Source: Perkinsus chesapeaki ATCC PRA-425
Taxonomy: Eukaryota; Protista; Perkinsozoa
Direction: 5' to 3'
NCBI GenBank assembly: GCA_013115145.1
Contig: JAAPAO010000167.1
Location: forward strand, 1-59,021
Length of the DNA stretch: 59,021 nt
Shown here: positions 53,216 to 59,021 of the stretch, piece by piece
Position numbering within the stretch: position 1 is the first letter of the stretch
Layout: each line of letters opens with the position of its first letter
Position numbers and translations under genes: made by a program
The notes under the pieces: model-generated
What the model was told of the DNA's origin: nothing
What the model saw: only the letters and a program-made list of their open reading frames with translations
Database searches by the model: none

Positions 53216-54631
53216 TTAAGTTGATATCTTCGTTACCATTCGAGTGATGGCCTGCATAAACTCATATTGTTGCAGTAATGCCCCTGTGACATGCCCTCCT
53301 CTAACCCATCTTATAGGGCACCCCAAATACTCACTCAATCTTTCCGTATTCTCACCAAGTATAATAGCGTCATGCCTCGCCCCTAGCAGCTCCACATTAT
53401 CGAATTCCCCCAGTTTAGGGTAAGTTGTTATATCGGTTATTGCAGTGGCCTCTTCTATGTACTCCCTATCGAGCCGAGGATTCACATAAGGTCGCATTGC
53501 GCTCCTCTCATGGGTCCACGTAGAGCTGGCTGACGCCGCCGGGAAAAATGCACATAACGGTAAAGTCGGGACACTGAGATTTTTGACCGTTAAAGCACTC
53601 ATAGTAGCAATCGATGCACCAATGGAAAGGCCTCCAACACATAGCCTATCCGGGCGTATCTTTTCATCTATCCAGTGCAAGATCGACCTCGTATCCGAAA
53701 CTGAGCGAACAGCGAAAGCCAAGAATTGTGATAGATCTCTTAGCCTTTCAGCATCGATTGAATTGGGTAGAGCTCGTCGGCCTCGAAGAGGGTTCTCGAG
53801 GAGGATCATCCCGCAGGTGCCACGCTGGGCTAGGTCGATGGACATGGGCACTTGCCGCGCCGCGTAGTGCTCAGCAAAGGAGGGTAGAAATACTACTAGA
53901 GGGCACCCGTGGTGAGGTGACCGAGCTCTGGTAGGGGTACCGAATATGGCATCTACTGTGTGATCTAGGAAAGCCTTGCTTTGACCTAAGATACCGAACC
54001 CCACTAAATCCAACCTCGACAGCAAAGATTCTCCATTAGGATTCATACTAGGTCGATTCGAGGTCTCCTGTACTGTAAATCGATCACCAGTAACCTCAGA
54101 CATTCGTCTAGCTATTGCCGTACCATCCTCATTGCTTGGCAATATAATTAAGCACCATCCCTCATCACATTGCTGAGGGAGCGGATCTTCGCACTCTAAA
54201 GAATCCGATGGGAAATGTCCAACCCGCCAGAGGACCCCTTTATATTTCAGCCATGTATCATCCAACCACTTAACAGTGAAGTCTGGATTAACTTTGTCAT
54301 TTCCTATTCGGTTCCGGGAAGCGTTTCGGATATTTTCTAGGTCAGTTTGAGGTCCTTCCTCATGGGCATGGAAATGGCAGATATCCTCATCAGGCCCCAG
54401 CTTCTCTCTTGCTATTCGTGCTGATCTATTTGACCACCAATAGTCAGCCAATGATAGGTATCCTCCCTGTGAAGGTTGATAGCTTTGCAATAACGCATTA
54501 CGTCGCATTTTAAAGGTTAAGTCGTACCACATATAAAGCCCGAGTACAGATACCCCTATCGTGGTAACCAAGCCACGTTGAACCCACCGAATCGATAGTA
54601 TAGGAGGAAGAAGCCTTTTAAAATGGGACAT
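53216..54631 (-). CDS. Alpha/beta hydrolase, ABHD18/DUF2048-like, intronless, with N-terminal TM helix
   Basis: 471-aa ORF with LLENPLRGRR, nucleophile elbow GLSIG, ARHDAII (Asp), GGHV (His) and hydrophobic GLVTTIGVSVLGLYMWY. Confidence 0.75.
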   Translation of the reverse strand: MSHFKRLLPPILSIRWVQRGLVTTIGVSVLGLYMWYDLTFKMRRNALLQSYQPSQGGYLSLADYWWSNRSARIAREKLGPDEDICHFHAHEEGPQTDLENIRNASRNRIGNDKVNPDFTVKWLDDTWLKYKGVLWRVGHFPSDSLECEDPLPQQCDEGWCLIILPSNEDGTAIARRMSEVTGDRFTVQETSNRPSMNPNGESLLSRLDLVGFGILGQSKAFLDHTVDAIFGTPTRARSPHHGCPLVVFLPSFAEHYAARQVPMSIDLAQRGTCGMILLENPLRGRRALPNSIDAERLRDLSQFLAFAVRSVSDTRSILHWIDEKIRPDRLCVGGLSIGASIATMSALTVKNLSVPTLPLCAFFPAASASSTWTHERSAMRPYVNPRLDREYIEEATAITDITTYPKLGEFDNVELLGARHDAIILGENTERLSEYLGCPIRWVRGGHVTGALLQQYEFMQAITRMVTKIST

Positions 54632-55231
54632 AGAGGCTTTTAATTGCCTGAAGCGTGACCAGGTTCAATTCCTCTGTTCGCTTGCCTTGTGTTCGAGCTG
54701 GCTTAACGAGTCAGGTGTCGTTAAAAGCGCACGCCCAATCAATCGATAAGGAATGTACGCGTTCCGTAGTGATTCCCGGGAACGTTCCCCAAGGGGGAGG
54801 TCATCTGGTAGATCATCCAGGGGTAGATCACATAATGAGGCTAGGGAAGGTCGGAGGAAGGTACTACCAACAAGGAGCGGCTTTTACCTTGAAATTTTCA
54901 CTGAAAAAAATTAATTTTTCGGTATTTTTCCGATTTTTTGGAGCGCGAAAGTCGGTCGGAAGTTTTCAAGCTTGCAAAGATTTATTTCCTAACGAATCTC
55001 GTTAGAAATACTTTTTATATATAAAGAATCCACCGAAACTCGCTCTATGATTGATCTTGAAAAGGAGTTTGGGAATCGCCTGACCGTATATTTAACGTAT
55101 TATGTTACGTATTAAAATACACCTGTATACTTGGCCATCCCTCCCGATCGCTCTATTTGTTATACGCCCTCTGTCGGCGTTTATGTGATAATAATAAGTA
55201 TATCGACATACATTGCTCTTATAGGCACGAG

Positions 55232-56276
55232 ATGATGAGTGGGAATATGAAAGAGAGGGTCGTGAAAAACGCTATAGAGAGTCCTCTAACCGTCGATCGG
55301 CTCCGAGATCGTTCTTTCGAGCATCTTCTCCCTCCTCCTCTACCCATCACGATGACAGGGTTGATCGTACCCATACGGCCAGCGGCAACCATGGCCCAAC
55401 AGCCCTACGACCAGTTAAGGACTTCCGTCCGAGAGTTAGGATTGAAAGGCATGAAAATAGAAGGGAAGCGGTGCTGTTCTTGATGTCATGGGATGATAAA
55501 AAGCCGCATACCATACCTGAAGTTGATGCTGCTATAGAGTAATAATAACTCATACAGACTTTTCCTCATTTATTTTCAGTGCGTTTATGAGAAAGCTGCC
55601 CAAGGAGCCGGAATATTATATTTTCACGGAGGAGCTGCTCTCTGGTACTATTTTTACCAACTTGATATCGCTGGTATTTTCTGGCAGGAATGGTACCGAA
55701 TTTGGTATACTGTGATAGATGGATAATGAGCATTCTGGATGAATCACTACAAAAATCGCTGACTACGTCCGAGCTATCAATTATGAGGTCCTATAGGGTT
55801 TTAAGGGGTCGCGGGTTCGAACCGCGGCACAAGCATGAATGGCAATTCTGTAGATTTAATTTGTTTCATCATGACAGTCTCCCCACGAGACTTCGACTCC
55901 CTTCATGGCGGCCACTTCTGTTATTATTCTGACACCTCTAGCTCTTAAAAGGGGGCCAGTGATGGGCGATACTGTTCCTATACTACTAGCTCCTCCCTTT
56001 TCTCACAGTACTTTTATGTCTATCAATGCCTATAAGCCCACCGCAATAATTCTTCCAAACTTCTTCTTCCACTAATGGCCTTCGTGTCCTTCAGGACTGC
56101 GGCATTCGAGCTTCTTAATCATCAGCATATCCCAACTACAGTTGTTATTAATGAGGCTAATTCCCTCGCCAAGGAGTTCTGCCCTCGATCTCAAACTCTA
56201 GTCCATGCCAGTGTTAATCGTATGATTGAAACTCAGTACAGTGTGGGACATCAGCTCAGAGAGGCTATGGTCGCAG
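55232..56276 (+). CDS. NusB-domain protein, spliced (start uncertain; may continue downstream)
   Basis: Exons joined across introns 55435-55460, 55539-55579, 55645-55687 and 55788-56094 give ..REREAVLFLMSWD..YIFTEELLSGMVPNLVYCDRWIMSILDESLQKSLTTSELSIMRTAAFELLNHQHIPTTVVINEANSLAKEF. This is colinear with bacterial NusB as recalled (YFRELLAGV..YLD..EKAVLRIALYEL..VPYKVAINEAIELAKSF). Confidence 0.75.
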
Positions 56277-56319
56277 GTAGGGCTCAGACACTGACATATT
56301 TTATTATCAATTTGCGCAG

Positions 56320-57495
56320 GCGATTTGCGCAACAACTCTAAGCCGTCATCGCCTATGGGGTCTGAGGGTGGCAGCGGCGGCGGCAAGCATAGGGAGAGTA
56401 ATGGATCTACTGCTTTTGGTATGCAGACCTGCAGTGCTCAACAGCTTAACAGTATGGATCCGGCCACGCAACTTGCATTATTATTAATAGAAAAGGTAAT
56501 ATGGTCCGTTGGCCGACGAAGTTTTGGTAGGGGAGCTCGGTCACATTATTTATCGATAGAACAATATCAGCATAATATATTTTCCTCGCGTATCGGTTGA
56601 CAGCTGTTAATACGATAACCGTTCAGAGGGCACTTTCTTCAAAACTTCACGTTATGGTGAAGGATACGGTATTACCTCATTAGCACTATTAATCTGTCGA
56701 GACGGTCTGCCTTCGGTCTTTGGGCAAGTATAAACGTTGCACTCAACCTCAATTGATAGCAGTAATCGCTCCATCTTCCCCAGTTGGCCTCTACCACTCC
56801 TTCAACTCTTTGATGTCGATACCTACCACATTCCGCCGCCGGCTCTCACTGAATTATTAACACGTTGCTTTCTGGTTATTTGTCCAATACCAGTTTTAAC
56901 AAATCGTATCTGCCGCCTCTTGTTTCATAATGCATTTGTTAGGAACGAAAGAAGAAGGAGAAAAAGGAAAAAAAGAAGAAGTCCCGCAAGCGACGTCACC
57001 GACATAGATCCAGTAGTTCTCGGAGCTACAGTGAAGACTCTCACTCACGAAGTCGCTCCTATGACCGTGATCGCAGCACTTCACAAGCCTTGAGGTACGG
57101 AGCATCTAATACACCTTTATCACTTTGGTGTCCCAGGTCGAGCAATTTTGCGAATATGGTGCCACCTAACCATCCTGACTACCGGCCGGCTCGTATAGAG
57201 TATCAACCAATCGATCCATCACAGCATATCCAACCGAGGGCGGCGGCTTCACCAGAGGTAGGATCGACAGGTATTCTCATAAAGCAGTTTTATATAGTCC
57301 CTGTCTGGCACCGGTACGCCCAGTGTTGGTAGTGGCGGCTACGGTGGTGGTGGCGGTATTATTAATCCACCATTAACCTCACATAATGTTTATGGGCAAG
57401 AGGATGCCGTAGACCCTAACGACTTTGTGAAGGCTGGTCAAAGAGCAGCTGCTATGTTGATGAATCAGGGTAGGCTATCTATTGCCATCAGATAG
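56320..57495 (+). CDS. Low-complexity and Lys/Arg/Ser-rich exons (tail of the NusB gene or a separate gene)
   Basis: Exon 56943-57094 encodes ERKKKEKKEKKKKSRKRRHRHRSSSSRSYSEDSHSRSRSYDRDRS and splices in frame to SSNFANMVPPNHPDYRP.. Confidence 0.5.
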
Positions 57496-57707
57496 TAGAA
57501 AATGAGAGTATCCCCTCTTCCTTTGTTGCCTTCAATCACGCCTTGTATTTCCCTCGATCCGAAATTTTCGGTGTAGCTTCGGGAATTTCGAGGTTTTTAA
57601 CGGCTTTCATATTTTTCTCCTGGCTTCCCGGTTGAAACGGTCCTTATACTGGATTGTATATTTGAGCTTGAAGCGTGCACTTGATAATCCAAATGATTCC
57701 TTCATTT

Positions 57708-59021
57708 TTATGTGTTAGGTGTTGGAAGATCTAAACAGCAAACCCCTTTGGTCTCCGGTACGATCAAGACTATACCGCAGAAGAGGGTGGAGCTATGTAA
57801 TGCTACCACCCAGACGACACCACGTCCAGATCTCGATAAAGATGTTGTCATTTGGCGACTTAGACCGCAGCGATCCACTGGTTGATTGGGTTTCTGCAAG
57901 CATTTTCGTCGACGATCACTATTACCATTAGTATACTTTATCCTACCATCATCATGGTGGTGATGCTGCTGCTGCTGCTCCGCTTGTTTAAGTGTTCTTG
58001 TGTATAGTATTAATACTAGAAGCTGGGTTTTCAATAGTTTTGATGCACTGCTTCTTTATCTCTAAACATTTCCATGAGATATTCATCGTGTCAGATCTGG
58101 TCAGGTACCATTTTCTAACGGCGACGTCGGAAACTGGTGAATATCCTCACATCGCTAGGTCGCCATCCATCAGGCATTGCGGGGATAGAAGGGAATTTTG
58201 GTATCAAATTTGTTCTTGGAACAAAGGGAGAGCTTATATGCATCCATGATGGTAACACTTTGTGACCCTCTCTTTCTCAAGTTCATTCTAGAACCGCGCT
58301 TTCGCGGTGACATGTATCGATCATCTAGAACTTCATGGCTTGAAGCCGACCGCATGGGAGTCGGTGCTGCTAATTGAAGTTCGTGTCCAGGAGGTTAGCT
58401 AACACTACTTTATGTATGTATGAGCTCCTCAACTTGGTCACTTCCAACCACGGTTAGTTAAAGGGTATCGTTTGGTCCTGTGTAGCTATGCGTGCCTATA
58501 TGTAGTAGTTTTACGGGGCTCCGGTAATCTCTGTTAAGTTGCTCTTGGCTTTTGAAACCCTCTTTGGTGCCCCTCCTATCCCTTGGGGTAGCGAAAGGAG
58601 GCTCTATACTACTTGACAAGGTATCACTCCTCACAAAGATCGTAATGAAAATCTCCAATGAGGCTTCGAAGCCCTCGACTCGGAGGTGGTGTCAGTCAGT
58701 GACGTGACGCCATGGCGGGCGCCACCGTCTTCGCAAGGGTGACGCCGTTACCGGTACGAGTTGTTGTCTAACCGCTGCTCGGTGCCAAGGGTCTGTATCT
58801 CGGATTCAAACTCGGATCAAGTTTGAACTATAGCGGATTGCCCTCTTTATTCAGAGTTTGTCTTTATCGCCATGCTGGGCTTACTTGTCGCTACCACCGC
58901 CGCTCTTTTGGTTCATTCCGGGCTAACGGAGCCTTGCGATCCCTCCAGACGTCCACCATTGCCCGAGACAGCGAAAGACATGTTATCTCGCACTGTGCGG
59001 TTAGATGGTGTGCCAAATGAT
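57708..59021 (-). CDS. 3' part of an unidentified gene entering from the right edge
   Basis: Open exon-like segments with Q/H runs; no motif recognised. Confidence 0.25.

Follow-up and report, generated by a model that had tools for sequence, protein, structure and literature searches.

NusB is regarded as a bacterial or organellar factor that is tied to the bacterial RNA polymerase and to ribosomal protein S10. Bacterial NusB, a stand-alone protein of about 130-160 aa, acts with NusE/S10 on boxA RNA and the bacterial RNA polymerase. The same fold makes up the N-domain of RsmB/Sun, the 16S rRNA m5C967 methyltransferase (PDB 1SQF), where it has an RNA-binding role on rRNA and is followed by the methyltransferase domain (Methyltr_RsmB-F). 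Nuclear-encoded NusB-domain proteins of eukaryotes include those of plants and algae, which are organelle-targeted and whose hosts have plastids with a genome and a polymerase of the bacterial type. In SR-related nuclear proteins, e.g., the PWI-domain protein SRRM1, a small helical domain that binds RNA is paired with an RS or mixed-charge domain. A divergent NusB domain has also been predicted in the hypothetical protein LmjF.28.1740 of a plastid-less eukaryote, Leishmania major (PMC4046975); this protein was not recovered as a relative in our family searches.

The gene described here is located in a window of 59,021 nucleotides, the whole stretch of DNA that was analysed (Perkinsus chesapeaki ATCC PRA-425, assembly GCA_013115145.1, contig JAAPAO010000167.1, positions 1 to 59,021). 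Our hand-built model at positions 54753-57884 of the forward strand consists of ten exons and nine introns, all with GT..AG borders, and encodes a product of 518 aa. Translation starts in exon 1 (54753-54860), which encodes residues 1-36 of an Arg/Ser-rich N-terminal region, and exon 2 (55225-55538) encodes the rest of this Arg-rich mixed-charge region (55225-55446, residues 37-110) and, from 55447, the beginning of a NusB domain. The domain continues through exons 3 (55580-55644) and 4 (55688-55787) and has its last coding part in exon 5 (56095-56276); its coding region (55447-56276, residues 111-256) is thus distributed over four exons with GT..AG introns of 41, 43, and 307 nt. A disordered Gly/Ser linker and, from about 56436, the start of a conserved helix are encoded in exon 6 (56320-56495), and exon 7 (56943-57094), which is in frame with exon 6, encodes a Lys-rich and then Arg/Ser-rich stretch (residues 316-365) that resembles a nuclear localization signal or an RS domain. 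A mostly disordered Pro/Gly-rich region begins in exon 8 (57137-57257) and continues in exon 9 (57298-57469), the two exons together encoding a helix (residues 448-461) and a short conserved motif, I.Y/I.I. Exon 10 (57719-57884) encodes a C-terminal family motif and ends with a TGA stop codon (57882-57884). Five of the introns have a length of 40-43 nt and the other four of 364, 307, 447, and 249 nt. The initial annotation had placed four canonical introns in the interval 55232-56276. Their GT..AG borders and in-frame joins hold, but only three lie inside this interval, and candidates for the fourth are the upstream intron at 54861-55224 and the downstream one at 56277-56319.

The first 518 residues of the GenBank entry "hypothetical protein FOL47_002437" (595 aa, 'partial') are identical to our model; the entry is labelled P. 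chesapeaki, in agreement with the Perkinsus-like host considered in the initial annotation. In the GenBank model, the TGA at 57882-57884 is skipped by splicing, and 77 further residues are encoded between 58176 and the end of the contig. Because the orthologues in Perkinsus olseni terminate at the equivalent of window position 57884, we take this C-terminal extension as an over-prediction that probably stems from joining the model to a truncated gene downstream. The start codon is preceded by an in-frame TAA two codons upstream, and its position is the same in the P. olseni protein and locus (GCA_013115135.1). The nine predicted splice junctions of the P. chesapeaki gene rest on comparative evidence: the ten exons recur in the P. 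olseni locus, with every one of the nine introns at the corresponding position. A single ORF of 471 aa on the reverse strand (53216-54631) is oriented head-to-head with the gene at a distance of 121 bp from its start codon. The P. olseni counterpart of this ORF is an ABHD18-type hydrolase by its Pfam annotation, and the two genes lie in synteny, on opposite strands, in P. chesapeaki and P. olseni.

Exon 5 alone (56096-56275) scored 23.1 bits (E 1e-4) against the Pfam NusB model (PF01029), which equals its gathering cut-off of 23.1 bits, and the full 518-aa product scored 43.1 bits (E 7e-11), with profile positions 2-124 of 133 aligned to residues 113-232. The P. olseni orthologue scored 45.4 bits. 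A pairwise BLASTP search against E. coli NusB aligned 114 residues colinearly at 31% identity (E 2e-10). The proposal that the spliced protein is colinear with NusB over its whole length is thereby upheld, as is the presence of the hallmark motifs VINEANSLAKEF and RTAAFELL, both of which are fully or almost fully conserved in the family described below. Identity to bacterial NusB proteins is 25-31%. With the NCBIfam nusB model (TIGR01951), the P. chesapeaki protein reached 55.2 bits (E 8e-15) and its relatives 41-56 bits, all of them below the equivalog cut-off of 88.35 bits. The NCBIfam RsmB model gave 21 bits, compared to its cut-off of 319, and no second Pfam domain, including a methyltransferase, follows NusB in either the P. 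chesapeaki or the P. olseni protein. An RsmB N-terminus is ruled out by the lack of a methyltransferase domain and by the score of 21 vs 55 bits for nusB, in agreement with the initial annotation, which had seen no RsmB methyltransferase motifs downstream. A PDB search with a profile of 38 family members matched only NusB chains (best E 1.6e-6), with RsmB chains absent up to an E of 1.

In the AlphaFold2 model, residues 110-257 have a pLDDT above 90 and are the only confidently ordered part of the protein. A Foldseek search of the PDB with this model had as its best 11 matches exclusively NusB structures (E. coli, M. tuberculosis, T. maritima, and Aquifex; probability 1.00, TM-score by target 0.67-0.80), followed at rank 12 by RsmB (1SQF). 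The domain has the same all-helical fold as bacterial NusB (E. coli, PDB 3D3B/1EY1) over about 140 residues, and a shape search of the ESM Atlas returned bacterial NusB/RsmB clusters only. CFAP99 and central-pair proteins that also appeared in structure searches were weak coiled-coil matches and were disregarded. Perkinsus and bacterial proteins have the R..A..EL and P..V.INE...LAK helices and a basic N-terminal arm in common; the two helix signatures vary little or not at all among family members, and the arm, R-I-D/E-R-H-E-x-R (R108, R111, H112, E113, and R115), is nearly invariant. Of Y18, E75, and E81 of E. coli NusB, which we take to be its NusE-contacting residues, only E81 has a clearly acidic counterpart, Asp or Glu in every case, in the family alignments; Ile, Met, or Thr occupies the position of Y18, and that of E75 is Gln or variable, according to the alignment. 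On sequence and predicted fold, the domain is a complete NusB of the stand-alone type, homologous to bacterial NusB. Its function is nevertheless not transferable from bacterial NusB, because the score is below the equivalog cut-off (55 vs 88 bits). Since it falls short of this cut-off and is not a small stand-alone factor, classification of the protein as an antitermination factor would be inappropriate. Compared to the roughly 140 aa of bacterial NusB, it has 518 aa, with disordered flanks and additional conserved modules toward the C-terminus, and its gene has nine introns.

Comparison with the P. olseni locus shows where the gene is constrained. Exons 1-5, through the end of NusB, have equal lengths in the two species and 76-84% nucleotide identity, and their alignment is gap-free except for six gap columns in the low-complexity part of exon 2. 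In the introns, identity is 28-66%, with many gaps and differing lengths. The NusB part (residues 109-256) has 97% amino acid identity between the species, with a pN of 0.017, a saturated pS of 0.775, and a pN/pS of 0.022, compared to 82% identity, a pN of 0.103, a pS of 0.713, and a pN/pS of 0.145 in the N-terminal low-complexity part. Judged from these substitution patterns, the NusB domain is under strong purifying selection in Perkinsus. Database clusters of P. olseni contain several allelic copies of the protein.

The same architecture is present in about 35 proteins of marine eukaryotes, which derive from marine metagenomes, JGI samples, and Logan assemblies. A search with exon 5 against 1.84 billion representative proteins yielded 12 matches, one of which, a 1099-aa repeat protein, was a false match due to low complexity, and a profile search recovered 37 family proteins. 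The only named members in the searches run are those of P. chesapeaki and P. olseni, the latter with the automatic UniProt name "NusB/RsmB/TIM44 domain-containing protein". The architecture is conserved in 31 aligned members, among them a single-exon environmental ORF of 458 aa, and the positions that are invariant among them include E159, D172, W174, Q184, R196, A198, E201-L202, I208-P209-T210-T211-V212, E216, N218, K222, H233, and N237-R238-M239-I240-E241-T242. The P. chesapeaki gene is already in GenBank and UniProt under automatic labels only, the family is small, and its function is deduced; a literature search found no description of a nuclear-type NusB-RS protein. Since this design is kept in diverse uncultured marine eukaryotes, we regard the proteins as a family with its own function and not as a leftover.

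On long environmental contigs, the surroundings of these genes are eukaryotic, compact, and poor in introns. BTB-Kelch, PDCD5, two unknown genes, the NusB-family gene, and Rtf1 follow one another in this order in several environmental genomes, a contig of JGI sample 3300059473 included. These genomes, in which only very short spacers separate the genes, belong to an abundant lineage of marine eukaryotes that has no close named relative in the databases searched. NusB-family proteins that share this order are only about 50-75% identical to the family protein P0008. Searches with the neighbouring Rtf1 and GH31 genes of environmental relatives gave unnamed metagenome proteins as the only close matches, and the nearest named eukaryote matches were at 36-38% identity. 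The single-exon environmental ORF of 458 aa has a 163-residue N-terminus rich in Arg, Asp, Glu, and Ser and the same downstream modules as the Perkinsus protein. On this and other environmental contigs, gene callers split the long ORF into a wrong-frame 'gene' of 150 aa over the Arg-rich region and a truncated NusB product of 257-281 aa; database lengths for the family are therefore often too short. The N-terminal tails vary from about 5 to about 200 residues among members as called, and the very short ones may be truncated gene calls.

The NusB domain of the Perkinsus protein is embedded in long low-complexity regions. The N-terminal 107 residues are composed of 23% Arg, 17% Ser, and 15% Asp+Glu, have a net charge of +12, and are mostly modelled with a pLDDT below 50, with the exception of a charged helix at residues 30-56. 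In the family members checked, N-termini contain 23-35% Arg and 14-31% Asp+Glu, with acidic residues from the first 10-20 positions on, and in none of the seven does any 9-residue stretch within the first 60 residues reach a hydropathy of zero. Neither composition nor hydropathy thus indicates a hydrophobic signal or a presequence-like N-terminus, which bears out the initial annotation, in which no signal peptide was seen. After NusB, the modules follow in the order Gly/Ser linker, helix, Lys-rich then Arg/Ser-rich stretch, Pro/Gly-rich disorder, and C-terminal motif. The helix (residues 304-333, pLDDT 80-85) carries the family motif LD..AQLAL.LLE, in which the columns of A309 and L312 are invariant and those of L302, D303, Q307, and L308 nearly so. 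Residues 316-365 consist of 42% Arg+Lys and 26% Ser, a stretch that the P. olseni orthologue also has, and the C-terminal motif N-A-T/S-T-Q-T ... V-x-I-W/Y-R-L is conserved in most family members. The Arg-rich/RS and Lys/Arg/Ser-rich flanks are disordered in the AlphaFold2 model, and the FOL47_002437 protein contains 16 RS, 6 SR, and 8 RE dipeptides. With its long disordered regions rich in RS, RD, and RE dipeptides, the protein belongs to the SR-related/arginine-rich mixed-charge type. Disordered flanks of this kind are found in nuclear, nucleolar, or speckle RNA-processing proteins. The overall build is the same as that of SRRM1-type proteins, i.e., a small helical domain in long disordered Arg/Ser and Arg/Asp/Glu regions, but the folded domain there is PWI or RRM and here is NusB; this is an analogy and implies no homology. 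Plastid-targeted NusB proteins of plants and algae differ in having a targeting peptide, which the Perkinsus protein lacks, and in lacking its nuclear-type low-complexity tails. That the family conserves both the Arg-rich mixed-charge/RS flank and the Lys-rich flank argues for a non-organellar protein and for repurposing of the domain, which the initial annotation had suggested; nuclear read-through of gene arrays was one of the candidate roles that it put forward.

This is a genuine, selected nuclear gene for a protein in which NusB is the sole folded module, and we consider it fairly probable that the product is a nuclear RNA-binding protein. This reading, drawn from sequence comparison and the structural model, follows from the combination of nuclear-type flanks, the lack of an organelle-targeting sequence, and the retention of the NusB signature residues. 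The NusB fold would hold a specific RNA, possibly with a ribosomal protein of the S10 family as partner, and the flanks, judging from general knowledge of such regions, would direct the protein to the nucleus, nucleolus, or speckles. Its setting would be pre-rRNA processing and ribosome assembly or pre-mRNA processing; antitermination of a bacterial-type polymerase would not be its role. To our knowledge, Perkinsus has no bacterial-type RNA polymerase on which NusB could act and its plastid has no genome; its mitochondrial polymerase is presumably of the phage type. A nucleolar, pre-ribosomal role is attractive because NusB is ancestrally tied to rRNA leaders and S10, but the RS and mixed-charge tails may fit a speckle or pre-mRNA role equally well. 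More speculatively, and in our view improbably, NusB was recruited to the nucleus and might pair with the cytosolic-type uS10 (RPS20) on a boxA-like element in pre-rRNA or in spliced-leader or multigene transcripts, where it would help a nuclear polymerase to transcribe processively or the RNA to fold during transcription. If true, such a nuclear NusB-uS10 pairing would constitute a Nus-type antitermination or RNA-chaperone system outside bacteria and organelles. A factor regarded as bacterial or organellar is here a complete, strongly selected domain built into a nuclear-type, RS-tailed protein, which offers a natural test of what RNA the NusB fold binds without its usual partners and whether it needs an S10-type partner.

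An unlikely alternative is that the fold is a mere protein-protein scaffold in a nuclear condensate protein and has lost RNA and S10 binding. The lack of conservation at the Y18 and E75 equivalents and the sub-equivalog TIGR01951 score are in line with such a loss, as are the family-specific invariant positions outside the bacterial signature (W174, Q184, T210-T211, H233, and R238-M239). The features common to all RNA-binding NusB/RsmB domains, i.e., the basic arm, R..A..EL, and P..V.INE...LAK, are, however, invariant or nearly so in the family, which is at odds with a pure scaffold.

We regard it as quite doubtful that the protein is an organellar NusB that enters the mitochondrion (or the plastid, which has no genome) and assists there in the assembly of the mitoribosome or of fragmented rRNA via mitochondrial S10. 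Assembly of the mitoribosome or of fragmented rRNA via S10 was the first role suggested in the initial annotation. NusB acts with S10 on rRNA in bacteria, and N-termini that are Arg/Ser-rich and net-positive, as in Perkinsus (+12), can sometimes serve as mitochondrial presequences, a point against a nuclear location. An N-terminus that is both acidic (14-31% from the first 10-20 positions on) and basic and has no hydrophobic signal is nevertheless a poor mitochondrial fit, its length variation of about 5 to about 200 residues also speaks against a targeting function, and a Lys-rich/RS tail and mixed-charge disorder such as it has are what nuclear proteins typically show. The occurrence of a predicted NusB-domain protein in a plastid-less kinetoplastid (PMC4046975) can be counted in favour of import.

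An artefact, whether through contamination with bacterial DNA, misassembly of the contig, or a gene that is a dead relic, is extremely improbable: nothing but the bacterial affinity of the domain points that way, and it is refuted by the match to the GenBank protein, nine spliceosomal introns at positions common with P. olseni, and the low pN/pS indicative of strong purifying selection, with the ABHD18 neighbour on the opposite strand in both species and several allelic copies in the P. olseni clusters as further evidence against it.

The long introns of the P. chesapeaki gene show features of their own. Intron 4 (307 nt) contains at 55805-55832 of the forward strand, starting 17 nt past the donor, a perfect tRNA T-arm/B-box-like hairpin (CGCGG-GTTCGAA-CCGCG), which is not present in the corresponding P. 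olseni intron; ARAGORN called no tRNA. When the gene and its long introns were scanned with Rfam for snoRNAs and other RNAs, the only match was a sub-threshold chance one to a CRISPR repeat model. The introns at 54861-55224, 56496-56942, and 57470-57718 (364, 447, and 249 nt) have P. olseni counterparts of only 119, 230, and 50 nt, respectively, and these much shorter lengths suggest lineage-specific insertions in P. chesapeaki.
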